IMG/VR virus record: IMGVR_UViG_3300036760_000522
Span: 62,001 to 126,000 of that record
Direction: 5' to 3' (one strand)
DNA length: 64,000 bases
Shown one piece after another: positions 1 through 62,854 of the stretch (within the stretch, counting starts at the first letter, position 1; each line of letters starts with the position of its first letter). The position numbers and the translations under genes were made by a program. The notes under the pieces are model-generated. The model ran no database searches. It was given only the letters and a program-made list of their open reading frames with translations, and had not been told where the DNA came from.

Positions 1-2
1 TA

Positions 3-293
3 CTGGCTCTGCAATTGTCGGAGGTTCTACACCGCATTGGGAAACGGCCTTTAATACGACAACAACGTAGCAAGGCGTTGACACCTAAAGGCAATCCACG
101 CAAATTGGCCTACTGTGTGAATTGGGAGGGTTCAGAGTTTACCAATGCCAGTCGAAAAGGTCGGTGGTCTTTCGAAGGACAGGAACTGTCTAGGATCAAG
201 GGGATCACAAAAGTTCCATACGAAGGACCAGTATACAATTTGGAGGTCGAAGGGGATCACACGTATGTTGTGCAGGGTGTAGTGGTGCACAAT
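3..293 (+). mobile_element. Intein, C-terminal part (probable LAGLIDADG-type remnant)
   Basis: Block F/G VYNLEVEGDHTYVVQGVVVHN followed by Cys+1 (TGT at 294-296). Confidence 0.9.
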
Positions 294-737
294 TGTTACG
301 GCACCTCAATAGTTGGTGGGTACGAAGGACCGTTCGATGTCGTCATGGCCCCCGACGACGCTGAACGAAAGCATTCACAACGTGACACGGGACGTACGAT
401 CGAACATGGGTACGAGGTTTGGACGGGTCCTAGTCCACTCCTCAGTCAACGTGACTTTGTCGTCAAGATCACAGGGGACCGCTACAGCGTAGGTGCTGTC
501 CGAATGCCGACGAATCGCGGCATGGTGCTCCAACAACACTTCATGTTGGGGCATTTGGACGAGAAAGACATCAGGTATCGTGTTCCGATCGATCTCTGCA
601 ATCACGTGGTGTCTAGGTATGTAGACCGGTTGGTTCCTCCTCTCAACTCACCTGCACAAATAACGGACAAGTCAAACATACCTAGTGAGCGTCAGATTCG
701 TGGCCGCACTATTACGTGGGAAAATATCGTCTGGTGA
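3..737 (+). CDS. Putative head-completion/neck protein, 5'-partial, interrupted by an intein
   Basis: Frame is open to the window edge. After the intein end the extein begins CYGTSIVGGYEGP, resembling CxxC-x-GT-x-x-GGY zinc-knuckle neck proteins. Lies upstream of the tail genes. Confidence 0.55.
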   Translation: MALQLSEVLHRIGKRPLIRQQRSKALTPKGNPRKLAYCVNWEGSEFTNASRKGRWSFEGQELSRIKGITKVPYEGPVYNLEVEGDHTYVVQGVVVHNCYGTSIVGGYEGPFDVVMAPDDAERKHSQRDTGRTIEHGYEVWTGPSPLLSQRDFVVKITGDRYSVGAVRMPTNRGMVLQQHFMLGHLDEKDIRYRVPIDLCNHVVSRYVDRLVPPLNSPAQITDKSNIPSERQIRGRTITWENIVW

Positions 738-738
738 C

Positions 739-1218
739 ATGATCTCTCCTCCACAATTTCGAATCAACGTGAAGTCGTTGCTACCCAAGCGACGGAAGGT
801 CGAACCACGACGTGTGTTGCGAGAAGCCCAGAAGGAGATCCTCCGACAGCTTCGACGGGAGATCCAGGACACTGCATTCTCGACTCGAGCCAAGCGGGCC
901 TTGAGTCAGGGAATGACGACTCGGATCGGAAACCGAAGTCTCAAGGTTATTGCGAAGCATCCTGCCTTCTTCCCGCTTCTACGTGGACAGAAGAGCGAAC
1001 AGATGACTTGGCTTACGAAAGCGAAACGGCCTATCCCGATCATCCTAGATGATGGTACTCTGATTTTCCGGAATGCGACTCCTCGAAGCATGCAAAACGG
1101 TAGTTGGATCCATCCTGGGCGTTCTCCGACGACCGTCATCGAACGGGCACGAAAGAAGACCCGAGAGATCATTCAACGACGCGTCGTGGAGTCTTTGCGG
1201 AAGGGTCTCGGAGTTTGA
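739..1218 (+). CDS. Basic virion morphogenesis/neck-type protein
   Basis: ATG at 739 just after the upstream stop. Arg/Lys-rich with a WIHPG motif near the C-terminus. Neck-module position. Confidence 0.45.
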   Translation: MISPPQFRINVKSLLPKRRKVEPRRVLREAQKEILRQLRREIQDTAFSTRAKRALSQGMTTRIGNRSLKVIAKHPAFFPLLRGQKSEQMTWLTKAKRPIPIILDDGTLIFRNATPRSMQNGSWIHPGRSPTTVIERARKKTREIIQRRVVESLRKGLGV

Positions 1219-1219
1219 C

Positions 1220-1780
1220 ATGTCGGACGGAGGAATCACTGTTTCGAAGACAACGACGGGGGCCTTTCTAATACAAGATATCCGTGTTTATGTCGAACAC
1301 GGCAAGGCGACTTTTATACCGGCTGACAAGGTTGTGTCGTCACGGGACCTGCACCGGGCTCTCTCAGACAAACAGCTCTTTCACTTGACGAGCAGCATGT
1401 TGCAACAACAGGCACAAGATCCTCGAGTAGCTGATCTGACTCGTACAAATGAGGATCTGCGACGTCAACTCGCCGAGCAGCAAGGCCAATGGCAACGGTC
1501 TGTAGAATCGTTGGAGAAGAAATTGGACAACGTCTTGGTAGCGGTGTCTCAACAACCGAAGGTCATTACCGTTCAGGCACCTGCGGCTGAGACAGCAGTA
1601 AAGATCGATTGGGAATTGAAGGAAGGAGCTAACGATATCGTGGACGAGACTGGAACATACGTTCCGAATATCCGGGCCAAAGCGGACAGTGTGAATGTGA
1701 CTGTGACCCCCAAGACCGAAGAAGTCTCTATTGAAGAGACTGCCAAACGCTTGCGACACACTCGCCGCAAACCCTTATGA
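1220..1780 (+). CDS. Hypothetical coiled-coil protein
   Basis: ATG at 1220 follows the upstream stop. Q/E/L-rich heptads. Contains repeat copy C. Confidence 0.6.
   Translation: MSDGGITVSKTTTGAFLIQDIRVYVEHGKATFIPADKVVSSRDLHRALSDKQLFHLTSSMLQQQAQDPRVADLTRTNEDLRRQLAEQQGQWQRSVESLEKKLDNVLVAVSQQPKVITVQAPAAETAVKIDWELKEGANDIVDETGTYVPNIRAKADSVNVTVTPKTEEVSIEETAKRLRHTRRKPL
1592..1622 (+). repeat. Dispersed CRISPR-repeat-like unit, copy C
   Basis: ACAGCAGTAAAGATCGATTGGGAATTGAAGG. Last 21 nt are identical to the reverse complement of 62922-62942; 23/31 ungapped identity to 58596-58626. Confidence 0.7.
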
Positions 1781-1793
1781 ATAGTCGTGTGGT

Positions 1794-2429
1794 ATGGACC
1801 CCGTTTGGCAAGCTGTTTGGCACGATCCGACTTCTTATGACGCCCTGATTCACGGGCCGCCTTACTTGCCAACGCAAAAGCTGAGCAGCGAAGACCGATC
1901 TGAGGTTCGAGCTTTTGCTCGAAAGACTGCGGACGATCTGCGTTACGTTACTTCAGGCACCACACTATTCGGTCTTCTGGCTTGGTTGCACGCAATGAGC
2001 TTCGTACATCAAGCACACCACTGGAACACTCGAGGACAACAGTCGTATCAGGACCATCTCTTGTTCGAACGGATCTACAAGGATTCACAAGCGGGGATCG
2101 ACAGTCTGGCCGAGCGTGCGGTTACGTTGGAAGGTCCTTTGCCTTTGATTTCGCACGTGAAGCGCATCCACGAGATCATCAATGTGAATGAACTCACAGG
2201 TCAGTCCGCGACAGAAATGTTGAAAGCTAGCCTAAACGGCGAGTCCGGCTGCCTGGGTTTATTGGAGCAGTTGATGTCCGTTATGACGTTGTCCCACGGA
2301 ACGTCCAATCTCTTGGAGGGGATTGCAGATCAACACGAGGTCTTCATTTATCTGTTGAAGCAACGTCTCGCTCCCATGCCTGTTTACTCGCCGAAGACTG
2401 CGAGCGCAAAATACACATACCAACGATGA
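1794..2429 (+). CDS. Dps/ferritin-like protein
   Basis: HHWNTRG...DHLLFERIY...IDSLAER matches the Dps ferroxidase-site pattern. Confidence 0.8.
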   Translation: MDPVWQAVWHDPTSYDALIHGPPYLPTQKLSSEDRSEVRAFARKTADDLRYVTSGTTLFGLLAWLHAMSFVHQAHHWNTRGQQSYQDHLLFERIYKDSQAGIDSLAERAVTLEGPLPLISHVKRIHEIINVNELTGQSATEMLKASLNGESGCLGLLEQLMSVMTLSHGTSNLLEGIADQHEVFIYLLKQRLAPMPVYSPKTASAKYTYQR

Positions 2430-2441
2430 GATCAAAATCAA

Positions 2442-3455
2442 ATGAAAGAAGACGAAAATCCCAAATACAAGCGAGGTGTCGGACTAGACATCGGGACCAT
2501 GAACATTGTAGTCGCTCGCCAATCCCTAGCGGGTAAGGTGGTGACGACTCGGATTAGAGATGCTTTCCTCGATCTCGAGAGCGACGCGAAACGGTCTCTC
2601 AAGCTATCCAAAGTCAACTACATCGAGAAAGACGACACACTGTACGTGATCGGCGACTCAGCTTTGACAATGGCCAATTTGTTCAAGCGTGAGGCCCGGC
2701 GCCCATTGAGTCAGGGGATCATCGCTCCAGGAGAACTTGACGCACAAGAAGTTCTGGAGATCTTGATTCATGAAGTCTTGGGTCTAGCAACTGAGCCTGA
2801 CGAGCCTTGTTACTACAGCGTTCCGGCCGACCCTGTGGATCGTCCTGGTGTCGACACTGTGTTTCACACTGAGGTGTTTCGCAAAATTCTCAAAAGAGGC
2901 GGACACGACCCACATCCTACCAATGAGGCACTCGCAATCATCTACAGCCAATGTAGCGAAAACAACTTTTCTGGTTTAGCTGTGAGTCTCGGCAGCGGAA
3001 TGGTAAATGTTGCCCTTGCGTACCAAGCCAACATGGGTTTATCATTTGCACTCTCTCGCGGTGGAGACTACATCGATTCACAATCAGGAAAGTCTGTTGG
3101 CAAGACCGCAAGTCAGATGTGTACGATCAAGGAGAAGGGCCTTGATCTAGCGGCTCCAAAAACTCGCGAGGAAGAAGCGATCACGTTTTATGTCCGGGCT
3201 CTCATCAACTATTCATTGCAGAACATTTCGATCCAGTTTCGCAAGACCGCGAGTGATATCACACTACCTGAGCCAATCCCGTTCATTGTGTCTGGCGGCA
3301 CGAGTCGCGCGACTGGATTCATGGGCCTGTTCGAGGAAGAGTTTGAGTCTGTGCGAAAAAAGTTTCCGATCCAAATCAGTGAGATTCGACAAGCTCGTGA
3401 CCCCATGACAGCTGTGGCGGAAGGCCTTCTCGCGTTGGCAACCGAAGAAGAGTGA
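2442..3455 (+). CDS. Actin-like ATPase (MreB/ParM/FtsA fold)
   Basis: Phosphate-1 GLDIGT, connect-1 NEALA, phosphate-2-like SLGSGM, GGDYID, adenosine IVSGGTS, connect-2 DPMTAVAEG. Confidence 0.85.
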   Translation: MKEDENPKYKRGVGLDIGTMNIVVARQSLAGKVVTTRIRDAFLDLESDAKRSLKLSKVNYIEKDDTLYVIGDSALTMANLFKREARRPLSQGIIAPGELDAQEVLEILIHEVLGLATEPDEPCYYSVPADPVDRPGVDTVFHTEVFRKILKRGGHDPHPTNEALAIIYSQCSENNFSGLAVSLGSGMVNVALAYQANMGLSFALSRGGDYIDSQSGKSVGKTASQMCTIKEKGLDLAAPKTREEEAITFYVRALINYSLQNISIQFRKTASDITLPEPIPFIVSGGTSRATGFMGLFEEEFESVRKKFPIQISEIRQARDPMTAVAEGLLALATEEE

Positions 3456-3474
3456 GGACGTCATCTACTACTAC

Positions 3475-4641
3475 TTGGTCCAGGCGCTTAAACGCCGATT
3501 GATTCTAGAGCTTCAAGACAGTTTCTCGAAGCATCCAGTCTACCAAAAGATCGTTCCATACATCCAGAATCGGTTCTCGTTTACGGAACGCCCTCAGTTT
3601 GGGATTGTAGTCAAAGGGTCGAGCGCCAACAAAGTTGCCCTGTCTGCCGACAACTACGTCGGCACTGTCCAGAGTCACGTGATGTTGGCGTACGTTGGTC
3701 AACCAGCCTATCCTGTTGAATGGGTGCGTGAAGATCTCGCCTGTCTTAACAGCAATGGCGGGAGGATGCCGACGCTTCCAGGGGTTTACTACCTCGAAAT
3801 ATTGGAAGCTCCGACGGCTTCGAACACTCCGGGGTATTTCGTGATCGATCCTCTCTACACAGTAATTGATGAATCTCTTCTGAGATTTCAATCAGGAGTC
3901 GAAAACGATGCACAGCTCGCACAAAAGCCCGTTCAGGGAACGGTCAGGATTTGGGAGAACCGAGACTATCTTTTGCGAGAAGGTACGGACTACACCGTCA
4001 ACTACGACACGGGTGCAGTGTCTCTAGATGTGTCGTTTGGTCCGGGATCAATCCTGACCGCGGACTACCGCAGTGGCGGTACATCAATTGGCCCTGTTGA
4101 GTTCCTTTGGAACTCGAGCAACACAACCATTTTGCCGGGGGTGGTGCTGGCATTCGGTAAACGATCCGAGAAAGGTCAAAAGGTCGCCGTGGTCGTCTAC
4201 CAAGACCGTGTCGATACTGCTGAGGCCTTTGGCGGCAAATTCGAAGTCACATTCGACTTTGACGTGATCGCCCGCGATACAATTCAAATGGAAGAGATCG
4301 CAGATCTCACCATCATGTACCTTTGGGGTCAGAAGAAATCGCGCCTTGGCCTTGAGGGTATCGAGATCATCGATATCTCCATGGGCGGAGAAGCTGAAGA
4401 ACTTGCGGATGAAACAGGCGAGGAGTTCTTCTATCAAGCGAGCCTCTCATTACAGCTACGTGCGGATTGGGAGCTCCACGTGCCCTTGCCTTACGTGATC
4501 AGCAAAGTGACAGCTACGACACCTGAAGGGGACACAGATCCCAGTGCGCCATCCGGGTTACAGCCTGTGGCGAGCCAAATCTTCTTTACGACCCATCCTG
4601 TCTTGGCTGGTCGTAACGACGCGTACGAGCGGATTAGCTAG
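3475..4641 (+). CDS. Putative tail terminator/tail completion protein
   Basis: Position before the sheath gene. Beta-rich insert (EGTDYTVNYDTGAV). C-terminal FDFDVIARD...EEIADL pattern. Confidence 0.5.
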   Translation: MVQALKRRLILELQDSFSKHPVYQKIVPYIQNRFSFTERPQFGIVVKGSSANKVALSADNYVGTVQSHVMLAYVGQPAYPVEWVREDLACLNSNGGRMPTLPGVYYLEILEAPTASNTPGYFVIDPLYTVIDESLLRFQSGVENDAQLAQKPVQGTVRIWENRDYLLREGTDYTVNYDTGAVSLDVSFGPGSILTADYRSGGTSIGPVEFLWNSSNTTILPGVVLAFGKRSEKGQKVAVVVYQDRVDTAEAFGGKFEVTFDFDVIARDTIQMEEIADLTIMYLWGQKKSRLGLEGIEIIDISMGGEAEELADETGEEFFYQASLSLQLRADWELHVPLPYVISKVTATTPEGDTDPSAPSGLQPVASQIFFTTHPVLAGRNDAYERIS

Positions 4642-4721
4642 GAAAAGCTTCGCTTTCCTTCAGCTTTATTGGTAGAGATCAAAATCGTCAGATGTTGAGA
4701 GATGTTGAGAGATTAGCTAGG
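4632..4721 (+). repeat. 11-nt direct repeat GATTAGCTAGG flanking a 68-nt segment that contains a tandem GATGTTGAGA x2
   Basis: Copies at 4632-4642 and 4711-4721; tandem 10-mer at 4691-4710. Confidence 0.85.
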
Positions 4722-5146
4722 TGCCTCGCTACACGTTTCAGTGTTCTTGTGGCTTCAGGCACTCACGAGCACTCCCGATAGGGGACTACCCAACTACCAG
4801 TTGTCCGAAGTGCCAACAGGCTGCCACAAGGGTATTGGACACGTTCGGTTTCCGGTTCAAAGCCTCTAAAACCGCAGCCCCTGCCAATACTGGCGTCGCC
4901 AAGGACGACTTCCCAACGGCCGATACCGCTGTTGGGAGGGATGCCGACGCCCGTTGGGCCGAGCATGAAGCCCGGGAGAAGGTCAAGAATAGGGTCCGAG
5001 AAGTTGGTGGTCATCGAGCAATTGTACGGGAAACCCACGCTGGCTACATCGAGTACAAAGCTGCTGGCGAACCCCTGCTCAAGACTCGCAGGAAGATCAA
5101 CAATGAACTGAAGGAGGTCCTGCGACGCCCTCCTCCGGCGCGATGA
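4721..5146 (+). CDS. FmdB-family zinc-ribbon protein
   Basis: MPRYTFQCSCG...CPKC...TRV N-terminus. Confidence 0.75.
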   Translation: MPRYTFQCSCGFRHSRALPIGDYPTTSCPKCQQAATRVLDTFGFRFKASKTAAPANTGVAKDDFPTADTAVGRDADARWAEHEAREKVKNRVREVGGHRAIVRETHAGYIEYKAAGEPLLKTRRKINNELKEVLRRPPPAR

Positions 5147-5859
5147 CTCCGCACGATCAGCTTCGGCCTTGTATTGTGTACTCCGCCAGGTGTGACGTAA
5201 ACGGTAAGTTGTATTTTGGGATCCGAAAACACATAAACACAGCTAAACGCGGTTCGCATTACATTTTCCATGCGGCTTTACGTAAATACGGAGCTTCCAA
5301 TTTTGTGTGGACCGTTTGTGAAATCACAAATTGGCGTGGAGCTTGTGCGTCAGAGATCCGACTCATTGAAGAACACGACACGTGTAACCAGAACAAAGGT
5401 TACAACACTGCAAAAGGTGGCAACGGCACGTTAGGATTCAGCCTCCCAACGGAAACGCGGCGTAAGATTAGTTCGTCACTGAAAGCGTGGCACGCTTCGG
5501 GAGATCCGAAAGCACAAGCGCTTAGAGCAAAGGTGAGTCATGTGCGCCGCACTATGGAGACTAGCCTAGCCACACGGTTGAAGCGTGCTGAAGTCAGTCG
5601 AGGTCGGGGACTGTCTAAAGAGTCTCGATCCAAACTACGCGCTTCAAAGCGTAAGTATTCGGACGCCATAGTAGCTGAAGCGACCAACTACGCTAAACAG
5701 CACGGTTATCGAGCAGCAGAAAGGGCTTTCAACATCCCGCGACCCACAATTCGCCGCTGGTCCAGAACCCCGGAGGAGCAAGACGAAGCCCGACGCCTAA
5801 TGCGAGAAAACCATCGTAAACGACAGTACGGCTACGCTTTTCCTCTTGTAGGCCCCTGA
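5143..5859 (+). CDS. Free-standing GIY-YIG homing endonuclease with NUMOD3-like repeats and a C-terminal HTH, possibly degenerate
   Basis: IVY...GKLYFG, FHAALRKYG, EIRLI, GYN..KGG, ETRRKISSS. Confidence 0.75.
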   Translation: MTPHDQLRPCIVYSARCDVNGKLYFGIRKHINTAKRGSHYIFHAALRKYGASNFVWTVCEITNWRGACASEIRLIEEHDTCNQNKGYNTAKGGNGTLGFSLPTETRRKISSSLKAWHASGDPKAQALRAKVSHVRRTMETSLATRLKRAEVSRGRGLSKESRSKLRASKRKYSDAIVAEATNYAKQHGYRAAERAFNIPRPTIRRWSRTPEEQDEARRLMRENHRKRQYGYAFPLVGP

Positions 5860-5965
5860 TGGTTAAAAACACTGCCCCGAACCCAATACCACTGTCCCAA
5901 TTTCAATATCCGATCCCAAAACCACATTCGATCCCAAAAACCGCTAGTTCGAAGTGAGGTCATCA

Positions 5966-8900
5966 ATGAGTATTGGTCCATTTTCAACATACGTACCCCC
6001 AGGCGTCTACACCCGCACATTGACTGAAGCCAACGCGGCCAATCTGGTTGCTGGCCTTAGGATCCCGGCCGAAATCGGAGTCGGGCAAGAGGAACTCGAG
6101 CAGTTGGATCTCGAGTTGGTTCGTGGGTCATCATCGAACCTCGACCAACAAATCATCAACGAAGACGTATCTACGCGCTTTGTTGTCGACGAGACCAATC
6201 CGAACAACCCGGTGCTTGGTTCGCCCAACGGGCTCGTAGCTAAGTTCAAAGTACGAAACTACCCGATTGTTGATGGTCAAGGATTCGGCAAAACTACGAA
6301 CAGCGTTCGTAGTGTCACAGTCACGATCAACGGGACCCCGGTTGCTGTTGGTGCAGTCCAAGGCACGCCTGGCTACGTCACCTTGCAGGTTCCTCCACAA
6401 ACAGGGGACAACATCCGGTGCACGTACTACTTCCACCGATCGGATACGAGTTTTCAAGACGACGTTTCAGAGCAAGTGACTGCGGAGCTTGCCGAGCTCA
6501 CGTCACCAGGGTACGCGTCTTTCATCATCGTTACCGGTACAACCGACACGTTCGTCATCGAAGTCGACGGTGTCTCCTTGACTTTGCTCTTTGCAGCCGG
6601 GACCTACACCGCGACTGGTTTGAAGAGCGTCATCGATTCGTACCTGGTTTCCGGACTCGCGACGGCAGTTTATGTCGACGGACAAGGGCGTAGCCATCTC
6701 AAGTTTTCAGCAGCGCGTAGCGTCAAGATCGGCAGCGGGAATGCCAACGGTGCTCTTGGGTTCGCGACTAACACACAGACGAATCGAAATGCTATTTTCC
6801 GTGTTTTTCAGCGGCCAATCGTGGACGGTACAGACGGTGGAATCACGACTACGGATCCCACCAAAGTTGTCGTGACTGTGAACAACGTTCAAGTTGTCGC
6901 AACCGCAGTCGATGGGTCAAATGGGCTTGTCACACTACCGTATGCGCCTGCCAATGGTTCGACAGTCAGGATCCAGTATTTCGCCAACACGTGGCAAGAC
7001 ACGTTCGACTATTTGCCGAATACCTTGGTGACGAGTGTCATTCGATCTGGTTTTGCACCCGGTCGCAACGACTACATCGAAAACCAAGACTTCGTCATCT
7101 CGAATCCGAGCCCTGATGTTTCGATCATGCATTGGGGTGCGAGTTTCGATGTCGCTAGTACTTTGCGATCAGCGGGCGCCACGCTCCTCAATGAAGTACA
7201 GATCCTTCCAACACTTGTTGACGATAGAATCTACCTCGCCGAGGCCGAGCATTTTGTCGATACGACGGTTGTTCCTGCGGTCGCATCGTCAACAGTATTT
7301 CTCTTGCCGGATGTGCCGACTACTGGCAACGGACGAGACACACCACTCAGCTCAGCAACCTTCGGAGCTGTGACGAACGGTCGAATCGGACTCAATACCA
7401 ATCGACCGGATTTGGTGATCGTCTACACGGGCCGCGATTTGCAGGACGCTCTTGGGCGTGGAGCTGTGGCGGTTGTCGAGGTCGATGGTACGACGCGCAA
7501 CATCACACTCAAAGATCCTGTACCGCCCGACCACATCGCGTTTTGCACGTTTTGGTACAATCGATTGCGTGACGATACATACATCCTGACCAACAAAGTG
7601 GCAGGTCCGATTGGTACGGGACAATTCGAAGTCCTCTCGACCTTGACAGGATTGAACGTTCTTCAAGTTCGATTTGGTATCAAGACAGGGTTGCCAGAGA
7701 CAGTGCAATGGCCACGTGGTGTCGAGCAAATCTCAGACGCGTTCCACACTGGAGCCGGTGCCCCTGTTGCTGAAACAGTAACTGTACTTTTCGGTACGAG
7801 TCTTGCGAAAAATGCGGTCTTCACGAATGAAGGCGCAGCTCCCTATTCGTTCTTCACGACGTACTCCAACAACTGGCGAACGACGATCAACGGTACATCA
7901 CTGGTCACCAACCTTGGCACGTCAGCCAGAGGTTTCTTGGTTTCTAGTCGTGTTCCAGTGAGCGGGCTGAACCAAATCAGTATCCCTGTTTCCCCGAACA
8001 ACGTCCTTGAACTCACCATCGACGGCACGGACGTCACGGTGGCGGTGACAGCTGGGCTACGCACACCTGCTCAAATCGTGACAGACATCAACGCAGCAAT
8101 CGACGCAGCAGCGGCCTTCATCGGCACAGCTCCCAACGTCCTTGCTTCGTTTGTCCAGATCGGCGGCTCTGGTGGTGACGCAGTCTTCATCGTTCAGTCG
8201 TACTCAGCGCCTGCGGCACTGCCTGGAGGCTTCGATCACGCGTCTGTGATTTCAGTTCGTCAGGGAACGGTCGAGGCAGTACTTGGCTACGACACGTTCC
8301 AGACCGCGTCCGGGACGCCTACTGCGACGAACAAACCTGCAACCTTGTTGGGAACGGTTGCAGGTCCTTTCACGATCACGGCCGATGTCGACGACGAACT
8401 CATCATCCGAGTCGACGGAATCGACTACACGATCACGTTGCCGGCGGGAGCGGCTGTGACAGCCGCAGCTGTTGTCGCGTCAATCGCGGCTCTCCCAGGG
8501 CTTACCTCAGTTCCAAGCGTCGGGACTTTGGCGAACCTCAACAAGATCCGTTTGACGAGTACGTTGACAGATCCAAGCTCAGGTATTCAGATCCTGAGCG
8601 GGACAGCCAACGCGATCCTCGGCTTCACTGAGGGCGACATTGCAAGCCAAACGCTCGTCACAGCTATCGAAGTCATCGATCGCTTGAACTCGACAGTAGG
8701 GTTCCTCACTGACGGCTTCGCCTACGTGGGCGAGATCGACGGCCAAGAATACGTCACGATCGAGTCGTTGACGACGGGTGCGACAACTTCATCCGTCGCT
8801 TTCGCTGACGGGACCGCGAGTGCCTTCAACGTCTCGACTGGAACTCAAATCGTTCCTGGTACGAGCGGTGACAATGGGGAGAGCTCGTACGGTAACTTTA

Positions 8901-10231
8901 CGGTTTCGAGCAACAACGCGGCAGGTTCCGGAGGTACTGGCGTTCCTGGTCAGACCTACACGGACGAAGTGACAGGACTACGACTCACAGTCTTGCCAGC
9001 TACATCTGGTAGCTACACACCTGGCGGCTCCTTCACGTTGGAAGTCAGCCCGACGTGGAAGGTCAATCCTGCTGTTCCGTACCTCTCCATTCCCGGTATC
9101 GAGACCGTTGTGACGGATACTGTAGGGGTCGGAGTCAACGACACAGCTACGGTCCAGACCTTCAATCCAAGCGGTCTCGAGCCCGCGATTGGGGACTTTT
9201 ACTATGTCTCCTATCGCTTCATGAAGCAGGACTTTTCGACGAGACTCTTTCAGCAATTCAAGACGATCGAGGCCAACTTCGGGCGGTTGTCACCAGAGAA
9301 TCGCGTCACACTTGGGGCCTTCCTCATGATCTTGAATGGAGCTGTTCTGGTAGCCATCAAGCAAGTCTTGAAGGTCCCCAACACGGCTCAAGCTTCAGAC
9401 CTCAGCTTCATCGAGGCTATTGGAGAACTTGCGACGCCTCTTCCTGGGAACGTCAAGCCTGACATTCTGGTGCCCTTGTCGGCCAGTACGTCGGTCTACA
9501 GCGCTTTGATGCAGCACTGTGAGGTCCAGAGCAACATCCGAAATCAAAACGAACGGATGGGCTTCATAGGGGTCGCATCGGGTACGTCACCGATCTCGGC
9601 CCAAACGATCGCCAAGAGCCTGCTTTCGAGTCGGATCCTGCTTTTCTACCCAGACTCAGCAGTCATCACTCTCTCCAACGAACTCGGTGAGAGCTTCGAG
9701 ACTCTGGTCGACGGTACCAACTTCGCAGCGGCAGTAGCAGGTGCAGGGGTCAGTCCCAGTGTCGACGTAGCAACTCCGTACACCCGTCGACGAATCCAAG
9801 GCTTTACCAGGATCCCAAGAATTCTTGATCCTGTGGAAGCCAACCAAACGGCTGTGGCAGGCGTCACCATCCTGGAAGATCTAGATCCCTTGGTCAGAAT
9901 CCGCCAGGGCCTCACAACCGACATGAGCACGATTCTGAGCCGGTTGCCGACCGTGACTCAGATTGCGGACCACACACATCAACAGTCTCGTGGGACACTC
10001 GACGCATTCATTGGGACGAAGTTCTTGGCGGCTCGAACCAACGAAGTCGAAGTTGCCATGACTGCGTTGTTCAAGCAGTTGGTTCAGGCGGAAATCGTCG
10101 GAGCCTTCACAGGTATCACGGCAAATGTTGACGCTGACGATCCTACAATTCTCAGGTTCGAGTGCTTCTACGCACCGGTGTTCCCACTTTTGTACATCGT
10201 CATGACCTTCAACCTCCGAGCGAGGATCTAA
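5966..10231 (+). CDS. Contractile tail sheath protein (1421 aa)
   Basis: N-terminal YVPPGVY, C-terminal sheath domain ending YAPVFPLLYIVMTFNL. RBS GAGGT precedes ATG 5966. Confidence 0.9.
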   Translation: MSIGPFSTYVPPGVYTRTLTEANAANLVAGLRIPAEIGVGQEELEQLDLELVRGSSSNLDQQIINEDVSTRFVVDETNPNNPVLGSPNGLVAKFKVRNYPIVDGQGFGKTTNSVRSVTVTINGTPVAVGAVQGTPGYVTLQVPPQTGDNIRCTYYFHRSDTSFQDDVSEQVTAELAELTSPGYASFIIVTGTTDTFVIEVDGVSLTLLFAAGTYTATGLKSVIDSYLVSGLATAVYVDGQGRSHLKFSAARSVKIGSGNANGALGFATNTQTNRNAIFRVFQRPIVDGTDGGITTTDPTKVVVTVNNVQVVATAVDGSNGLVTLPYAPANGSTVRIQYFANTWQDTFDYLPNTLVTSVIRSGFAPGRNDYIENQDFVISNPSPDVSIMHWGASFDVASTLRSAGATLLNEVQILPTLVDDRIYLAEAEHFVDTTVVPAVASSTVFLLPDVPTTGNGRDTPLSSATFGAVTNGRIGLNTNRPDLVIVYTGRDLQDALGRGAVAVVEVDGTTRNITLKDPVPPDHIAFCTFWYNRLRDDTYILTNKVAGPIGTGQFEVLSTLTGLNVLQVRFGIKTGLPETVQWPRGVEQISDAFHTGAGAPVAETVTVLFGTSLAKNAVFTNEGAAPYSFFTTYSNNWRTTINGTSLVTNLGTSARGFLVSSRVPVSGLNQISIPVSPNNVLELTIDGTDVTVAVTAGLRTPAQIVTDINAAIDAAAAFIGTAPNVLASFVQIGGSGGDAVFIVQSYSAPAALPGGFDHASVISVRQGTVEAVLGYDTFQTASGTPTATNKPATLLGTVAGPFTITADVDDELIIRVDGIDYTITLPAGAAVTAAAVVASIAALPGLTSVPSVGTLANLNKIRLTSTLTDPSSGIQILSGTANAILGFTEGDIASQTLVTAIEVIDRLNSTVGFLTDGFAYVGEIDGQEYVTIESLTTGATTSSVAFADGTASAFNVSTGTQIVPGTSGDNGESSYGNFTVSSNNAAGSGGTGVPGQTYTDEVTGLRLTVLPATSGSYTPGGSFTLEVSPTWKVNPAVPYLSIPGIETVVTDTVGVGVNDTATVQTFNPSGLEPAIGDFYYVSYRFMKQDFSTRLFQQFKTIEANFGRLSPENRVTLGAFLMILNGAVLVAIKQVLKVPNTAQASDLSFIEAIGELATPLPGNVKPDILVPLSASTSVYSALMQHCEVQSNIRNQNERMGFIGVASGTSPISAQTIAKSLLSSRILLFYPDSAVITLSNELGESFETLVDGTNFAAAVAGAGVSPSVDVATPYTRRRIQGFTRIPRILDPVEANQTAVAGVTILEDLDPLVRIRQGLTTDMSTILSRLPTVTQIADHTHQQSRGTLDAFIGTKFLAARTNEVEVAMTALFKQLVQAEIVGAFTGITANVDADDPTILRFECFYAPVFPLLYIVMTFNLRARI

Positions 10232-10266
10232 CCTCGCGAATCTTTTCCTGAAAGGCACAAAAGTAC

Positions 10267-10635
10267 ATGACGTCTATTCAAACCGCTCTGGGAGAGTTCG
10301 TACGAGTCGCCAAGACCTTTCCAACAAATAAAGCGCTCAGGGACTACCTCAGCGAGCATCCAAATGCAGATGCTAACGCACACAAAGTTGTTCGCAGCCC
10401 CGGCCGACTTGACAGAATCAAAGACCCACATGACCGGGCAGAGGCTTGGCTGGAGAAGCAAAGGGAACAGAGAAAAGAGGAGTCCAAGGCTAAGCGCAAG
10501 GAGAAGAAACTTAAGAAGGACGAGGATGCCAAGGCAAACCCCGAGCCGTCCAAGAAGGAGGCCTCGACACTCAAATCAGCCTTAGACGCCTTTCAACACG
10601 TTGTTACTAAGCAAGCGTTGAGGCCCCTCCCGTGA
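10267..10635 (+). CDS. Small charged protein, putative internal head protein
   Basis: FPTNKALRDYLSEHPNADANAHKV module shared with 11806-12663; K/E-rich tail. Confidence 0.6.
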   Translation: MTSIQTALGEFVRVAKTFPTNKALRDYLSEHPNADANAHKVVRSPGRLDRIKDPHDRAEAWLEKQREQRKEESKAKRKEKKLKKDEDAKANPEPSKKEASTLKSALDAFQHVVTKQALRPLP

Positions 10636-11087
10636 ACAACATAGAGACCTCGACAGCACGGATTGTCCGGCGCTTTCTCGTTTTAGCTAGCCGCACGGAC
10701 TCCGGTGACCACAGTCCTGATCCCTACACGTATCGGGCTTTCTTGTCGGAGTTCGAGAAAGGTGAAGAGACAGGCTTAGAGCAGGGCGAAAGCATGATGC
10801 ACCAGGGCAAGGCTCGTGATGTAGACGTCGACATCGACAGTTGCGGCACCATCGTCAGCCAAACAGTTTGGGACCTCATGGAGATGGCCAAGCGCATGAA
10901 CGCGATTACGTCGCGAGGTCAGGTCATGGGTGTCAACGAAAGACGTCTGTCCGCCAAGATGAGTGGGATCCTCTCCACGTTGTTTTACTTCACAGGTCGA
11001 CAGAAGGGTCTCACGAAAGCCTTGAAGGAGACTGCCTATTCACCGACCCTGCCGAGTGCCCCGGAAGCACCTCGTGCTCGCGTTTGA
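10632..11087 (+). CDS. Hypothetical protein with N-terminal STARIVRRF motif
   Basis: GTGA overlap with the upstream gene; motif shared with neighbours. Confidence 0.6.
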   Translation: MNNIETSTARIVRRFLVLASRTDSGDHSPDPYTYRAFLSEFEKGEETGLEQGESMMHQGKARDVDVDIDSCGTIVSQTVWDLMEMAKRMNAITSRGQVMGVNERRLSAKMSGILSTLFYFTGRQKGLTKALKETAYSPTLPSAPEAPRARV

Positions 11088-13821: not shown

Positions 13822-14999
13822 AATTGGAAGCCTCAGCTGCTCGCGTTGCAAGCATGTACCGTCGAGGACGTCGCGATCTCAACTACGAGACTGCCAAAGA
13901 GGTCTTGGGCTTCCCTCCGGGTTCGAGTCCGACTGACGACGAAATTCGCCACGTACAGCGCGTAAAAATCGTCGAGCTTGGACACGATAGAGGAGGGGAT
14001 ATTGACGCTATCAAAGAAGTTAATGCTGCGGCAGAGATTCTTCTTGGCAAGTTAAAGCCAGACAGAGGTCCTGACGACATTGCGGAGCCGTACGTGCCTC
14101 GAGGTGGGCCACCACCTCCTGAAGAAAAACCGATCATCATCACCTTCCAGGAAGCTCTCGCCAAAATCAGTCTCCCGTCGTCAGTCACTTGGAAGTTCGT
14201 GACTGACAAGGCTCGCGGTCGGGGTTGGGCATCAGATGAGTCGGAATCAAGACACGTGGGCTACGTAGCCGTGGGGGAGACGCCAAATTTTTGGGTCTTT
14301 GTCGCGGTCGAGGAGCGTTCGTACCAAGCTTTCTTCGTCGGAGGTGGACCCAAGACACACGTCTTCCGGATGAAGGTCTACGAGCAACCAAATAAGGGAA
14401 CGCCAACGCCAGCTTTCTTGTACGGCGGCGTCATGAAGGCTTGGAAGTTTTTCGAGAAGCTCGACAAGCGCTTCAATTCCAAGATCCATCCTCTAGCTGA
14501 GGACTGGACCTTTCTAGATTTCGCGAAACGTTTTCCGCTGAGCCGAGCAACGACGATCAAAAACTGGCTCGTCGACACCGGTGTCGTCGAAGAAGCGACG
14601 CTTGCCAAACCACGCAAGATCAAGGTTGAGATCAAATACGTCAGATTACCTTCACACATGATGCCACCTGACGCGCCTCGCTCAGCAGAGGACCATTTCG
14701 TTTTGATCGTCAACGGCAAAGAGGATAATCTCTCTCCGAAAGATGATGAGGCTCTCTCCAAACTACGGATCGGCGGAAAGCGCTTTGCGGAACGGGTCTT
14801 CGGCGAATACCACTACGGTGGCGAGATTCGAGACTTGACACGCAATCGTGACGGGAAGACCATCATGAGCTGGATGGCAGAACATTTGATCCACCTACCA
14901 GAGTTCTTCAAGAACAGCCTTCTGACTGCTTCGGGCGGTAAGACCGCGACCGAGCGTGTCGCTGAACGTTTCAGGGGATCTTATGTCCACAGCCACTGA
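13818..14999 (+). CDS. Protein with a degenerate J-domain and motif copies at both ends
   Basis: AKEVLG...PTDDEIR...GHDRGGD...VNAAAEIL resembles a DnaJ J-domain (HPD replaced by GHD). TTG start overlaps the upstream stop. Confidence 0.6.
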   Translation: MKLEASAARVASMYRRGRRDLNYETAKEVLGFPPGSSPTDDEIRHVQRVKIVELGHDRGGDIDAIKEVNAAAEILLGKLKPDRGPDDIAEPYVPRGGPPPPEEKPIIITFQEALAKISLPSSVTWKFVTDKARGRGWASDESESRHVGYVAVGETPNFWVFVAVEERSYQAFFVGGGPKTHVFRMKVYEQPNKGTPTPAFLYGGVMKAWKFFEKLDKRFNSKIHPLAEDWTFLDFAKRFPLSRATTIKNWLVDTGVVEEATLAKPRKIKVEIKYVRLPSHMMPPDAPRSAEDHFVLIVNGKEDNLSPKDDEALSKLRIGGKRFAERVFGEYHYGGEIRDLTRNRDGKTIMSWMAEHLIHLPEFFKNSLLTASGGKTATERVAERFRGSYVHSH

Positions 15000-17900
15000 T
15001 GTGATGAGAGTCTTTCATTCTTCGGAAGACGAAGATGAAGTGGTTGGCGAATTCCAAGTCGCTGAGTACATCATTTTCCTGCTCGCCCTCGACACGTACA
15101 TGAGGTACGCTGAGGAATCTTCAGGAGTTGATGACATCGAAGACGCGATTATTCGACGAGGCTTGCAAATTCTGCGTCGGGCCGAAGCCGATCTCGAGAA
15201 CTATGGAAGCTTTCTAGAAGAGCATTTGTCGACTCCCGTCCAGAAACAAATGCTCAAGAGGGCTTTGTCGTTCAAGTCGTTCACCCCTAACGGCATGGCG
15301 CGTCGAGCATTGCAATTTCGGACCTTGCTATCCAGAGGCGGGGCACAAACAGTTCGAGCCGTTTTCGAATCCAACAAATACATCCGGCAGATGCGTGAAG
15401 CGATCGCAGCTTCGATGATGGAGGACGCGGACAAGGCTCTAGACATTTTTGCTGCAATGCCTCTCCGTAATTCACGGTTTCGTGTTTGGGTCGATGAGAG
15501 CGCAAAGCAAGCGGGCTCTGGTGAAAGCGCACCACAACCTGTTGAGGCAGCTTCGAACGAATCGTCGAGCGAAATCCGACAAGAGCTTCTGGTACAACAA
15601 GTCCAAAGCACAGTTGCCGTGGGAGCTGAAGCTGCTCGAGACGCCAAGGACTCACGATCAGCGCTCCTCGAGCAAACCGAGAATGAGGCGAGAGAAGCCG
15701 CCAAGCGGAGCATTGAGGTCAACCAACAGCGTGACGAGCCACTGACAAGATCCGAAGTCGTCGGTGTTGCAGCAGCGGCTGCTATGGCCGCAACAACTGA
15801 TCCGTCGAATCCTCAAAACATACCTGAGTCATTGAGGGCTCTTGACGACGAGCAACGAGCTGCTGCTCTGACCAACGGTCGCGTAGTTGTTGCAGCAGGA
15901 GCCGGCGCGGGAAAAAGTTTTACCTTGGTTCAGCGCGTCACCTACCTTGTGAAGGAACAGCGCGTAGGTCCTAGTCGGATTCTCGTAACGACCTTCAACA
16001 ACAAAGCCGCTGAAGAGTTGAAGGAGAAGATCGGGAAATCCCTTGGTGGACAGGTACTGCAACAAATGTCAGTCGGCACCATGCACTCGCTCTTCAGTCG
16101 GTTCATCTCAGAGCACGGGACACCTGAAGAACGCCAAGCAATGCAGGCTCCCAGGTTCATGCGTGACGGCCTCTCCATCGCAGGGGCCGTCCAAAGGATG
16201 TGGAGCGACTGCTACGGCACAAAGCGACCAACGCCACGCATGAGGACGATGTTGGCCTACAAGTCTCAGTGGTCAGGCAACGGCATCACGCCAGCGGAAG
16301 CTTTGGCCACGGTGCCGCCGAGAAAAGAAGCACAAGACGCCGCGACTTGGTACACCATGTACGAGGGGCTCAAAGGGACACTGCCCGACTGGAGGCCTCC
16401 TTGTCAGTCGAATTCCTATACAAGGTTCATGTCACAGAACCGAGGCGATGGAAGTCGACTCGGAGACTTCTCCGACATGCTCCTCATCTTCCGTGACATT
16501 TTGAAGCGATCGCCTGTCGTACAGTCTGCCGTACAAAAGATGTTTGACCACGTGATCGTGGATGAAGCACAGGACCGAAATACCATCATGGCTGAGATCA
16601 TTGAAATGATCTCAGGACACATCAACGAAGATTCACAAGATAAATCTCTGTGGATTGTTGGAGATGACAAGCAGTGTGTACACGTAGACACATTGGTAGA
16701 CGTTCCTGGGAATCGCAGAGTCAGAGCAGGTGGCTTGAGAGTTGGGGCACAGGTATTGTCTTACCGTAACAGCAAGGTCACACCCCAAATTGTCGAATCT
16801 GTAACGAAGTCAGACTGGGCTTACGGATTCAAGGTGGTTACGGCTTCAGGTAGGTCTCTGACGATGTCCCCCAATCACAGGATTTGGGCAAGCGAGATCA
16901 ATCCTGAGATCGAAGACCGTATTGTGTACTTGATGCACAGGCCCAATTTAGGCTTCCGTGTGGGGGTCACAACTAACGGGAGGACCAAGAAAGGCAGACG
17001 GAGCATTCGCAGTCGAATGGCGATGGAGAATGCCGACAAGTTGTGGATCCTGAAGTTGTGCGGGGACTACGAAGAAGCCCTCCTTGAGGAGAGTTCTTAT
17101 TCGTTGACCTACGGGATCCCGACTGTTGTATTCAACGGCGTGTGGCGAGACCTGAACCAGGACCGCTTAGATGAAGTTTTCCGGAGATTTGGCAAGAATG
17201 GTATGAAATTGTTGGAAGCATCCAACTTGGATTTCGACCACCCGCATGTGACGGCCTACGCCTCGGGTAACGGTCGCGTAGCACGACGTGTCATTCAGAT
17301 GTTGGCACACCACTCTAAGGGCACTTTGGTATCCTTAGAGTGGACGGGAGATGACTTGGATTCTCCTCTCAAAGCCGCGCAGGTGATTTTTCAAAGCACA
17401 GGTCCTCGACGGAGATTGCGCAAACACTGTAACAGCTATCGGGATGCCATTTCCTTTGCAACAACTTTGAAAGGTCTGACAGGAGCTATCATCAACCGTC
17501 GTCTGTCTCGGCATGAGTTGGAGGAGCCCTACCAATTGATCCCTGCTGCCGGGCTATTTCCTGGCATGCGACTAGTGGTTCTAGAAGGGGAGGATGCTGT
17601 GGATTCTGAAGAGATCACTTCTATCGACAGAGTGGAGGGCTCTTTCGTTGACCTGAGTGTCGATGATGCCTCAAACTTTTTCGGTAATGGGATCCTCAGC
17701 CACAACAGCATCAATGCATTCCAAGGTGCACGTGCTGAGTTGTTCACCTCATTGTGGGATCAACCTGGGTGGAAGACTAGAGCCATCACAACCAACTACC
17801 GATGTGAGCCTGAAATCGTTGACGCAGCGAACGCTTTGATCGCAAACAATGAAGATCAGATTCCGATGGAGGCTAGGGCCGATCCCCGCAAAGTTCGCGG

Positions 17901-19173
17901 CGTCGGTAGCATCAAAGTCTTCAATCCACCTGATGAAGCGTCGGCGGCTCTTGATACTGTCGAGGCCATCAAGCAAAATTTGGCTCTCGGAGCCAATGTC
18001 ACAGATCACGCTATTTTGTGTCGAACCAACAAAGAGCTTCACGCGTTTGAAACTGCGTGCATCATTCGTGGCGTTCCCTACGCACGCAAAGGGGCGTCGA
18101 GCTTTTTCGGATCCCCAGAAACCAAAGCAGTCCTTGGTTATGTACAACTCGTGACCGGAACAGATCCCATCAAGATGCAGGGAGCTTTGGCCGATGCCAT
18201 CAACAAACCCAATCGCTTCTTCATTGATCCAAAGAAGGGCGCAGAGGCTGTTGAGAGGGCTATCGTCGACTACGCACGGACAAAGCAACAAGACCCTAAG
18301 ACTATTGATCCTGTCGAAGCGTTGTCTGATCGCGGTTTCGTTAACGGACTTGCTCGTCGCCTTCTCGACTTGAAGGGTGGACGTGGTCGGGATTTTGATC
18401 ACAAGCTCCGTGAGCTGGGAGACGCTCTGAAGGAGATGCGTGCTTTGGCACAGACAGGGGGCTACACGACTCGAGACTTGTTCGATCAAATCTTGGGACT
18501 TGAAGGGACTGCAATCGTTGGCGGGAAGTTCATTGAGCAGACTTTCCGTGAAACACTGCAAGCTGATTTGAAGGATCGTGTCGGCGACGAAACGGATGAC
18601 GATGAAGAAGAGGAAGACGAAACTGATCCGACTCGCGGACTCGGCAACGTCTCATTCCTCTACAAGCTCTCTGAAATTGACCCCACTGACGAAGACGATG
18701 CCCTGACACCTCCCACAACTCCCGCTGGTTTCAAATCCAAGATGGAACGTTACGCGGCTAGAATGCGGGATCTTCGTACCGACGTCACTGCGTGGTACAA
18801 GAAACAGTCAGCTCTTCCACCCGAACAAAGAACGCCTCCACCAGGAACTTACGTAGGGACAGTGCATAGTGTAAAAGGCGCTCAATGGCCCAACACTTAT
18901 GTGTCAATGCCGGCTGGTAAGTTTCCTTTCAACATCCCAAAACGTCCAGGTGAACCGCCGCCTGATCCAGATGAAGTCAAAGACCAAGTCGAGGGAGAGC
19001 GTCGCCTTGCTTACGTCGCCTTGACTCGCGCTGCTAAGAATTTGACCATCATTTGCCCGGGCGAAGTGGGAGGAAAGCCCGCTGGCGTCAGCGTGTTCGT
19101 CGCTGAGGCAAAACTCAAAGTCGGAGAGAATGTCGTGGCGATCGGAACTGAATCACCAACGGCGGAGGGTTGA
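14983..19173 (+). CDS. UvrD/PcrA-like SF1 helicase with N-terminal extension and intein
   Basis: AGAGAGKS, TTFNNKAA, GTMHS, VDEAQD, VGDDKQ|SINAFQGA, TNYRC, LCRTN, TVHSVKG, ERRLAYVALTRA. Confidence 0.93.
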   Translation: MSTATDVMRVFHSSEDEDEVVGEFQVAEYIIFLLALDTYMRYAEESSGVDDIEDAIIRRGLQILRRAEADLENYGSFLEEHLSTPVQKQMLKRALSFKSFTPNGMARRALQFRTLLSRGGAQTVRAVFESNKYIRQMREAIAASMMEDADKALDIFAAMPLRNSRFRVWVDESAKQAGSGESAPQPVEAASNESSSEIRQELLVQQVQSTVAVGAEAARDAKDSRSALLEQTENEAREAAKRSIEVNQQRDEPLTRSEVVGVAAAAAMAATTDPSNPQNIPESLRALDDEQRAAALTNGRVVVAAGAGAGKSFTLVQRVTYLVKEQRVGPSRILVTTFNNKAAEELKEKIGKSLGGQVLQQMSVGTMHSLFSRFISEHGTPEERQAMQAPRFMRDGLSIAGAVQRMWSDCYGTKRPTPRMRTMLAYKSQWSGNGITPAEALATVPPRKEAQDAATWYTMYEGLKGTLPDWRPPCQSNSYTRFMSQNRGDGSRLGDFSDMLLIFRDILKRSPVVQSAVQKMFDHVIVDEAQDRNTIMAEIIEMISGHINEDSQDKSLWIVGDDKQCVHVDTLVDVPGNRRVRAGGLRVGAQVLSYRNSKVTPQIVESVTKSDWAYGFKVVTASGRSLTMSPNHRIWASEINPEIEDRIVYLMHRPNLGFRVGVTTNGRTKKGRRSIRSRMAMENADKLWILKLCGDYEEALLEESSYSLTYGIPTVVFNGVWRDLNQDRLDEVFRRFGKNGMKLLEASNLDFDHPHVTAYASGNGRVARRVIQMLAHHSKGTLVSLEWTGDDLDSPLKAAQVIFQSTGPRRRLRKHCNSYRDAISFATTLKGLTGAIINRRLSRHELEEPYQLIPAAGLFPGMRLVVLEGEDAVDSEEITSIDRVEGSFVDLSVDDASNFFGNGILSHNSINAFQGARAELFTSLWDQPGWKTRAITTNYRCEPEIVDAANALIANNEDQIPMEARADPRKVRGVGSIKVFNPPDEASAALDTVEAIKQNLALGANVTDHAILCRTNKELHAFETACIIRGVPYARKGASSFFGSPETKAVLGYVQLVTGTDPIKMQGALADAINKPNRFFIDPKKGAEAVERAIVDYARTKQQDPKTIDPVEALSDRGFVNGLARRLLDLKGGRGRDFDHKLRELGDALKEMRALAQTGGYTTRDLFDQILGLEGTAIVGGKFIEQTFRETLQADLKDRVGDETDDDEEEEDETDPTRGLGNVSFLYKLSEIDPTDEDDALTPPTTPAGFKSKMERYAARMRDLRTDVTAWYKKQSALPPEQRTPPPGTYVGTVHSVKGAQWPNTYVSMPAGKFPFNIPKRPGEPPPDPDEVKDQVEGERRLAYVALTRAAKNLTIICPGEVGGKPAGVSVFVAEAKLKVGENVVAIGTESPTAEG
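16675..17706 (+). mobile_element. Intein (344 aa) in helicase motif III
   Basis: Starts CVHVDTLV, has block B TMSPNHRIW, ends NFFGNGILSHN before Ser+1. Removal restores GDDKQSINAFQGA. Confidence 0.92.
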
Positions 19174-48597: not shown

Positions 48598-49136
48598 TAG
48601 AAAAGCGCCTCCTCTCTGGCTCGTCTCAATCTGAATGCTATGCCGGCCATCGACAGACCAAGCTCTGAAGCGATTTGTTTTTTGGTTTTTCCGTTCGCAC
48701 GCAGCACCAAAATCGCAGAGGTAGCTACAGACCTTTTTGAAGCAGGAACGCCTAGCGTCCTCATCCTCTGGGACACTTTGCGTCCAAACTCTTCCCCTAA
48801 ACGGTATCCGCTTGAACTCTTACCGCCGTCCGCCAGGTTGGTCAACCGGTCCCCTCGTATCCGGGCATCACGAATCAACTGGATCTCCAACGCGTCTAAC
48901 TCCTCGTGCGTGGAAGCTGTTCCTAAAATCTTGACTGTGGGTTTCAACTGCAACTGACGTAGAGACGCTAACCAACACTTACAATGAGATTTGGATACAC
49001 GAAGGTTATGGGCTGAAAGATGGTACCCGATTCGGTTCTTTAGCAGTTGTACAGTCTGACCGACGTACCTAAGTTCATCTGTACGCGGATCACACAGACC
49101 GTAGACCGTTCCGCATAATGCTTTTTCGCGTGCCAA
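48597..49136 (-). CDS. Free-standing GIY-YIG homing endonuclease
   Basis: VYGLCDPR...RYVGQT...R...H, LEIQLI, LTNLADGG, C-terminal HTH. Confidence 0.85.
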   Translation of the reverse strand: MAREKALCGTVYGLCDPRTDELRYVGQTVQLLKNRIGYHLSAHNLRVSKSHCKCWLASLRQLQLKPTVKILGTASTHEELDALEIQLIRDARIRGDRLTNLADGGKSSSGYRLGEEFGRKVSQRMRTLGVPASKRSVATSAILVLRANGKTKKQIASELGLSMAGIAFRLRRAREEALF

Positions 49137-57221: not shown

Positions 57222-57254
57222 AAATTCATTTATGGTCCTTCAAGGGCAAGGCTT

Positions 57255-62853: not shown

Positions 62854-62854
62854 A

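Follow-up and report, generated by a model that had tools for sequence, protein, structure and literature searches.

A volactin-family actin gene in a huge-phage genome

The DNA described here is a stretch of 64,000 nucleotides (nt), referred to below as the window, which covers positions 62001-126000 of an IMG/VR virus record of 301,550 bp (IMGVR_UViG_3300036760_000522) and carries a gene for an actin-like protein beside phage tail genes. This gene is an intact open reading frame (ORF) at window positions 2442-3455 on the plus strand, begins with ATG and encodes a protein of 337 amino acids (aa), designated P0001. It is tightly packed between its neighbors: 12 nt separate the stop codon of the preceding gene from its ATG, and 19 nt separate its own stop codon from the next start. 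Direct terminal repeats are assigned to the record by its own classification, and ~92% of the genome is coding under the standard code.

P0001 is matched by the Pfam family Volactin (PF25216) with 236.2 bits (cut-off 35; E 8.5e-70), the match running from position 3 to 321 of the 321-position profile, and the same match was reproduced by a genome-level search. A Pfam scan of P0001 returned nothing besides Volactin at E ≤0.01, and MreB_Mbl (PF06723), FtsA, HSP70 and StbA/ParM were all without a match at this threshold; StbA/ParM (PF06406) was not matched in any other genome scanned either, the control genomes included. The NCBIfam MamK model (NF040964) gave 15.9 bits, which is below its cut-off of 400, and none of the PHROGs families was matched by the protein. 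P0001 is 34% identical to one archaeal family member (E 1e-68; 34-36% over the archaeal range) and ~20% identical to three MreB proteins. In an alignment with these MreBs, the five actin-fold motifs line up as follows:

Phosphate-1: GLDIGTMNIV
Connect-1: NEALAIIYS
Phosphate-2: SLGSGMVNV
Adenosine motif: VSGGTSRATGF
Connect-2: DPMTAVAEGL

Judged from the sequence, this motif set together with the Volactin match is well beyond chance. The first-pass annotation of the window had read the gene as an actin-fold ATPase with all motifs recognizable, and this reading is upheld by the alignment of the five motifs with MreB and by the full-length Volactin match.

The same annotation had singled out the phosphate-2 motif, which reads SLGSG instead of DxGxG. 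The serine, Ser182, is real, but P0001 is no exception in having it: all 95 rows of a family alignment carry Ser here, whereas three MreB sequences have Asp. The alignment consists of 70 main-clade phage sequences (from 67 viral contigs, two contigs binned in metagenome-assembled genomes (MAGs), and the GenBank phage LR745208), 13 sequences from archaea, 11 from Planctomycetota, and one from a second GenBank phage, LR756511. From this alignment, and not from a published definition, a phosphate-2 signature S-x-G-x-G-M-x-N was derived for the volactin family, in which Ser182, G184, G186, and N189 are invariant in the 95 rows and correspond to D/G/G/E in MreB. Altogether 21 residues are invariant across the family, those at the nucleotide site being D16, G18, T19, E162, S182, G184, G186, G208, D209, D212, G285, and G286. 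The Ser-type phosphate-2 is common to all 13 sampled archaeal members, and the replacement of Asp by Ser is, as far as the aligned sequences go, a trait of the whole family and not a peculiarity of P0001. Because the archaeal members share the serine and the name-giving volactin forms filaments in vivo (PMC10869688), Ser182 is no argument against polymerization.

An AlphaFold2 model of P0001, built on a 36-sequence alignment, reached a predicted local distance difference test score (pLDDT) of 94.1 and a predicted template modeling score of 0.91. It shows the four subdomains of the actin fold, a short disordered N-terminus, an acidic C-terminus, and no evident membrane-targeting helix. The top Foldseek matches of this model are MreB/Mbl, MamK (template modeling (TM) score 0.71/0.73), BeeR, FtsA, EutJ, actin, crenactin, and ParM, the last being a weaker match (TM 0.50-0.54). 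Because this list is flat, the fold alone is no proof of polymerization. Since the single P0001 sequence gave only one chance-level match against PDB sequences, a family profile was used for this search; at E ≤0.03 it retrieved only MamK (4e-10), BeeR (1.4e-4), FtsA (1.5e-4), and MreB (5e-3). By this profile evidence, the solved sequence relatives are all filament formers.

These comparisons bear on the alternative that P0001 is a non-polymerizing ATPase of the ASKHA type, namely a chaperone-like or assembly ATPase for tail and neck proteins, or a component of the virion. The Hsp70h of closteroviruses takes part in virion tail assembly. The canonical Asp of phosphate-2 is missing from P0001, and among the viral predicted structures in BFVD the nearest are Hsp70 homologs and Gp506 of Bacillus phage G (TM 0.54-0.58, 13% identity), none of them a close analog. 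However, P0001 has no substrate-binding domain and is only 337 aa long, has no Pfam HSP70 match, and has exclusively filament formers (MamK, BeeR, FtsA, and MreB) as its sequence-profile relatives; the Ser motif, moreover, is found in archaeal members of a family whose namesake polymerizes in vivo (PMC10869688). Neither a family-level sequence match nor the best structural match places P0001 with Hsp70 or other non-polymerizing ASKHA proteins. The first-pass annotation had named a structural grouping with such enzymes, together with a lack of filaments, as what would count against its reading, and the top structures are MamK, BeeR, MreB, actin, and crenactin, not sugar kinases. A non-polymerizing ATPase is considered unlikely, and P0001 is, by analogy with its relatives, probably a filament-forming actin of the volactin type.

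The structural gene block around the actin gene

The genes from the left edge of the window to the tail sheath, together with a helicase gene farther 3′, are as follows (window coordinates, strand in parentheses where recorded):

3..737 (+): 3′ end of the upstream gene, which encodes 878 aa with an intein (whole gene, genome 60101-62737)
1073..1780 (+): poorly conserved ORF of 235 aa, flanked by the intein gene and the ferritin-like gene
1794..2429 (+): ferritin/Dps-like protein, 211 aa (Pfam Ferritin, 4.9e-10; PHROG 3636 'DNA binding protein', 4.5e-16)
2442..3455 (+): volactin-family actin P0001, 337 aa (Pfam PF25216)
3475..4641 (+): neck/tail-terminator-like protein, 388 aa (feature-space neighbors, model, and Foldseek)
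4721..5146 (+): Zn-ribbon protein, 141 aa (Pfam Zn_ribbon_8, 6.9e-07, below its cut-off)
5143..5859 (+): homing endonuclease (PHROG 314, 5.4e-20)
5954..10231 (+): tail sheath, 1425 aa with large inserted domains (four lines of evidence)
14956-19173: UvrD/REP-type helicase, 1405 aa, with an intein-like segment at residues ~605-917

Synteny was assessed in two samples, 80 loci selected by the actin and 46 loci that were selected by the sheath and had room upstream. The order upstream gene, ferritin-like gene, actin, 388 aa protein, Zn-ribbon protein, and sheath, all on one strand, is co-linear in 65-76 of the 80 actin-selected loci. In the reverse test, the actin gene was found 2.7-4.3 kb upstream of the sheath gene in every one of the 46 sheath-selected loci. 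LR745208 keeps the block order though its sheath is only 40% identical. The placement of the gene amid neck and tail genes, as described in the first-pass annotation, is therefore borne out by the neck/terminator-like 388 aa gene and the 1425 aa sheath, as well as by baseplate hub and baseplate J genes farther on.

The 1425 aa protein is called a tail sheath on the following grounds. First, its residues 1060-1425 score 0.95 for Phage_sheath_1/1C in feature space, and nine of the ten best matches belong to one family or clan. Second, Phage_sheath_1C is matched by 3 of 15 sheath orthologs (E 0.0035). Third, the sole PF17482 match of the whole genome lies at the C-terminus of this protein (window 10046-10219, E 0.0017). 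Fourth, its N-terminus carries a PPGVY-type sequence. The feature-space neighbors of the 388 aa protein are SP10_terminator (0.90) and Gp37/Phage_tail_terminator (0.80), and Foldseek with its AlphaFold2 model (pLDDT 67) lists first the neck of phage 812 (5e-6), along with the necks of E217 and Pa193 and tail-tube proteins, all at low TM-scores. Since the model is of medium quality and these scores are low, the designation 'tail terminator' is probable and not firm. Searches of PDB sequences with profiles of this protein and of the sheath gave no match. The 388 aa gene is present in 76 of the 80 actin-selected and in all 46 sheath-selected loci. A DUF2460-like segment was also detected in 9 of 15 orthologs of the terminator-like protein and in the N-terminal part of 15 of 15 orthologs of the sheath, and through this recurrence the two adjacent proteins are seen to have a common domain.

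The Zn-ribbon gene belongs to the conserved block and occurs in 75/80 and 46/46 loci, respectively. The homing endonuclease gene that follows it occurs in only 5 of 80 related loci, is absent in locus L002, and is a sporadic mobile insertion between the Zn-ribbon and sheath genes, outside the conserved block. A GIY-YIG protein (48597-49136, minus strand) and an HNH protein (54503-55090, minus strand) are also encoded in the window, and with these and the homing endonuclease together the genome is rich in selfish elements. On the 3′ side of the sheath lie the UvrD-type helicase gene with its intein, which comes after the sheath gene in 38 of the 80 loci, a baseplate hub gene, and a hub/lysozyme-like gene, with baseplate J on the opposite strand.

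On the 5′ side, the ferritin-like gene is co-linear in 70 of the actin-selected and 44 of the sheath-selected loci. It stands directly 5′ of the actin, for which MamK is the closest relative of solved structure, and the pair is syntenic in 70/80 loci; this pairing of a ferritin-like with a MamK-related protein is probably a coincidence. The 235 aa ORF was detectable in 25 of the 80 loci at ~29% identity and has no Pfam or PHROG match. The upstream gene is co-linear in 65/80 actin-selected loci at ~59% identity. In 61 of 64 relatives it encodes ~450 aa without the intein, which in the 878 aa form consists of Hint, Intein_splicing, LAGLIDADG, and AP2-like parts. Its product has an invariant CxC...CxxC cluster, and was matched neither in the PDB by profile nor by any named PHROG. 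Farther upstream, outside the window, lie lectin-fold and DUF4376 proteins typical of fibers, and amid these fiber-like genes a patatin-like phospholipase is encoded (genome 51048-51932, Pfam 2.2e-27). Toward the other end of the window, 14 tRNA genes are clustered on the minus strand (57145-63333), for Arg, Met, Gln (two), Ser, Ala, Glu (two), Ile, Trp, Asp, Asn, and Lys (two).

Within the clade, the median identity of the phage actin is ~61-63%. The corresponding identities are ~62% for the sheath, ~59% for the 388 aa protein, 41% for the Zn-ribbon protein, and ~37% for the ferritin-like protein.

The neighborhood of the gene also bears on a second alternative, in which the filament would move or center the phage DNA or a replication body in the manner of ParM, prophage AlpC, or PhuZ, the ferritin/Dps-like or the Zn-ribbon protein would serve as an adaptor, and adjacency to tail genes would reflect only timing or history. 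ParM and AlpC act on DNA via an adaptor (PMC4446434, PMC5539076). The gene directly upstream of the actin matches both Ferritin (Dps-like) and PHROG 3636 'DNA binding protein', with synteny in 70/80 loci, the Zn-ribbon protein is syntenic in 75/80, a UvrD-type helicase lies 3′ of the sheath in 38/80, and in LR756511 the volactin-family gene is near a primase and not near tail genes. However, iterated centromere-like repeats were not found in window 1-11000, where only chance-level two-copy repeats occur, and the intergenic gaps around the actin are 12-94 nt. Pfam and PHROG scans recognized no ParR/AlpA-like adaptor among the neighbors. In addition, the tightest and most conserved linkage of the actin is that to the terminator-like and sheath genes (46/46), and the pace of change is much higher in the ferritin-like gene (37% identity) than in the actin gene (61%). 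DNA positioning by P0001 is therefore regarded as rather unlikely. The absence of an adjacent ParR-like partner, which had been noted in the first pass, stands insofar as neither a recognizable adaptor nor iterated repeats were found, but the flanking ferritin/Dps-like and Zn-ribbon proteins may be partners of the actin and are kept as candidates.

Spread and phylogeny of the family

At least 1360 relatives of P0001 were found by a word search; among the best 120 of them the identity is 61-69%, PF25216 is present in every one, and many are located on contigs of 200-465 kb. IMG/VR contains 145 confirmed actin loci on contigs of up to 529 kb. The actin is no orphan but belongs, in conserved synteny, to the core genes of a large clade of huge phages (contigs of ~230-530 kb). 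Near-identical DNA occurs only in sediment metagenomes, with a small share of words in one soil metagenome. Among GenBank phages, blastn gave no match, and tblastn revealed relatives of P0001 in only two complete metagenomic huge phages. LR745208 (485 kb), whose actin is 51% identical to P0001, comes from Rifle groundwater, and 75% of its gene taxonomy is unknown, the top phylum being Spirochaetes with 10% (PMC7162821). LR756511 (595 kb) comes from vernal-pool mud and encodes a volactin-family protein that is 29% identical to P0001.

The family is also found in cellular genomes. In the archaeal class that includes a Halobacteriales-labeled MAG, 61 genomes were sampled, and 15 of them have a PF25216 match above the cut-off; these archaeal members score ~400 bits, and some genomes have tandem paralogs. 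Among 101 sampled genomes of Planctomycetota, 44 likewise have matches above the cut-off, at ~270-300 bits. The planctomycete copies are on large chromosomal contigs, often as two to three paralogs, and some of these genomes also encode MreB. Planctomycetota carry a bacterial branch of the volactin family, of which no mention was found in papers on the family.

A tree of 54 rows was inferred with IQ-TREE under LG+C20 and rooted on three MreBs. Of the phylogeny against MreB, MamK, ParM, and FtsA that the first-pass annotation had proposed, the tree covers MreB, from which the monophyletic volactin family is separate (100/100 support); ParM, MamK, and FtsA were compared by structure and profile. 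The main phage clade is monophyletic (99/99) and sister to the archaeal group (96/99), with the planctomycete sequences as a basal grade. The root, however, lies on a branch as long as ~5 changes per site, and the phage proteins have a slightly higher plain identity to the planctomycete (40.5%) than to the archaeal proteins (36%). For these two reasons a separate phage branch is claimed but no donor, and the branching order of the phage, archaeal, and planctomycete groups is unsure from these sequences. LR756511 has a long branch outside the main phage clade, the placement of which is also unsure, and its actin may represent a separate acquisition.

The cellular members give some ground to a third alternative, a take-over of the host, in which the phage actin would alter the shape, size, or division of the host cell, or poison MreB or FtsA by copolymerization, with a larger or more stable cell for very large virions as the outcome. 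Archaeal volactin does act in cell-shape transitions (PMC10869688), and the chromosomal copies in 44 of 101 sampled Planctomycetota imply cellular roles for the family. Copolymerization is nevertheless unlikely because P0001 is only ~20% identical to MreB and has no MreB_Mbl or FtsA match in Pfam at E ≤0.01. P0001 is also without an evident membrane-targeting helix, and shape effectors are usually early genes, whereas this actin is locked into a structural block. A role in host take-over is considered improbable.

Several clues bear on the host. Bins holding relatives are labeled Betaproteobacteria, Lysinibacter, or 'uncultured bacterium', and Shine-Dalgarno-like words are mildly enriched in the genome, in which the start codons used are guesses. 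DnaB_C is present, Sigma70_r2 matches are below threshold only, and SLT, Peptidase_M23, and Amidase_2 domains were not found across the 301 kb genome. The clues from bin labels, from the Spirochaetes lean of the 485 kb relative, from Shine-Dalgarno words, and from domain markers are all weak, and none of them assigns the host to a domain or phylum.

Proposed role and comparison with known systems

The conserved, tail-linked volactin-family gene in every sampled relative suggests, from genome comparison, that these phages build an undescribed actin cytoskeleton. In the reading that we prefer, P0001 would bind and hydrolyze ATP and, by homology with volactin (PMC10869688), MamK, and BeeR (PMC11929497), would polymerize into dynamic filaments. 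It would be transcribed late together with the neck/terminator-like and sheath genes; late co-transcription seems most likely because the actin gene is packed head-to-tail with them. On the plus strand, no sigma-70-type promoter or terminator matches were found between the ferritin-like, actin, and 388 aa genes. The cytoskeleton made in this way would position or move capsids, tails, or the sites of assembly within infected cells, and the filament would be an actin counterpart of the PhuZ tubulin spindle; PhuZ and the phage 'bouquets' demonstrate that jumbo phages organize virion assembly spatially (PMC9067925, PMC7950403). The full chain, from ATP-driven filaments through late expression with tail genes to spatial organization of virion assembly, is put forward tentatively, by analogy with these systems. 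Its more specific form, a dedicated virion-assembly cytoskeleton whose filaments would act as a physical template for tails, necks, or capsids late in infection, or transport or align them, with the terminator-like and sheath proteins as partners, is rather doubtful.

Several points weigh against this proposal. Gene order points to co-inheritance and probably to co-transcription, and not to a functional link with the tail. The runs found to hold the P0001 stretch are DNA runs from sediment and soil, and no RNA run was among them. In LR756511, the volactin-family gene (locus L126, positions 8998-10017; 227.7 bits) is surrounded by PKD-domain proteins and a glycosyltransferase-like gene, with a primase nearby, and is outside any recognizable tail block; because of this different setting, the family can evidently serve phages without linkage to the tail. 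A prediction of two P0001 copies (residues 9-337 with ATP and Mg, no controls) scored 0.00, a value that is rated as 'no answer' and weighs neither way.

Phage-borne actins, exemplified by AlpC, and the volactin family as cataloged in Pfam are already known. What is new is a distinct phage lineage of this family that is set among structural genes and lacks the adaptor and centromere of the known actins from mobile elements. In the literature on volactin, on huge and jumbo phages, and on phage actins, no description of a huge-phage gene of the volactin type was found. Cytoskeletons built by phages are so far known essentially as tubulins (PhuZ and TubZ), besides one prophage actin acting on DNA (AlpC). 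Here an actin from a family only recently described in archaea is as conserved as the tail sheath and locked beside it in a large huge-phage clade with a global distribution. If P0001 polymerizes, the cell-biology-like organization of infection would extend to a second cytoskeletal superfamily and beyond the nucleus-forming Chimalliviridae. If it also proves to be an assembly cytoskeleton, it would represent the first machine for morphogenesis in a prokaryotic virus to be based on actin, conserved across hundreds of uncultured phages of 230-530 kb. The clade has no cultured member, yet P0001, with its 337 aa and confident model, is tractable for in vitro work, and the Ser-for-Asp phosphate-2 across the family merits mechanistic study. 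The copies on planctomycete chromosomes, in turn, put a family whose Pfam name comes from a haloarchaeal protein in a different light.

Among known systems, the closest is volactin itself (VolA, HVO_2015), which forms dynamic, tip-anchored filaments in Haloferax volcanii and has a role in the rod-to-disk transition (PMC10869688). P0001 shares with it the Pfam family, the phosphate-2 signature, the 21 invariant residues, a size of ~335-340 aa, and the lack of extra domains; this comparison rests on archaeal family members, and the H. volcanii control genome matches PF25216 above the cut-off. P0001 differs in its origin from a tailed huge phage, its own branch (99/99), its lower score (~240 vs. 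~400 bits), and its tail/neck gene block, and a rod-to-disk role has no obvious meaning for a phage. MamK, the magnetosome actin, and BeeR, a three-stranded tubular actin of Verrucomicrobiota, are only 17-20% identical to P0001, which in contrast to them has neither a magnetosome context nor a disordered N-terminal domain of the BeeR type.

With ParM/ParR/parC and AlpC/AlpA/alpS, the likeness consists in their being actin-fold ATPases of mobile elements, and the prophage AlpC is a precedent for an actin encoded by a phage (PMC4446434). Unlike these systems, the P0001 locus has no centromere-like repeats or recognizable adaptor, and its context is structural and not that of partition or replication. 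Gp506 of Bacillus phage G and other phage proteins in BFVD are similar in having an actin/ASKHA fold, 330-370 aa, and a large phage as their source, but their TM-scores of 0.54-0.60 and identities of 10-15% to P0001 mark them as a different family; the phage G paper makes no mention of an actin. Giant eukaryotic viruses, for their part, have viractins (PMC8850707). PhuZ differs from P0001 in belonging to the tubulin/FtsZ superfamily, of which no match was found in the 301 kb genome. It is, however, likewise a cytomotive-type protein encoded by jumbo phages and conserved across a phage clade, and is proposed here as the functional analog of P0001 (PMC7950403, PMC9067925).

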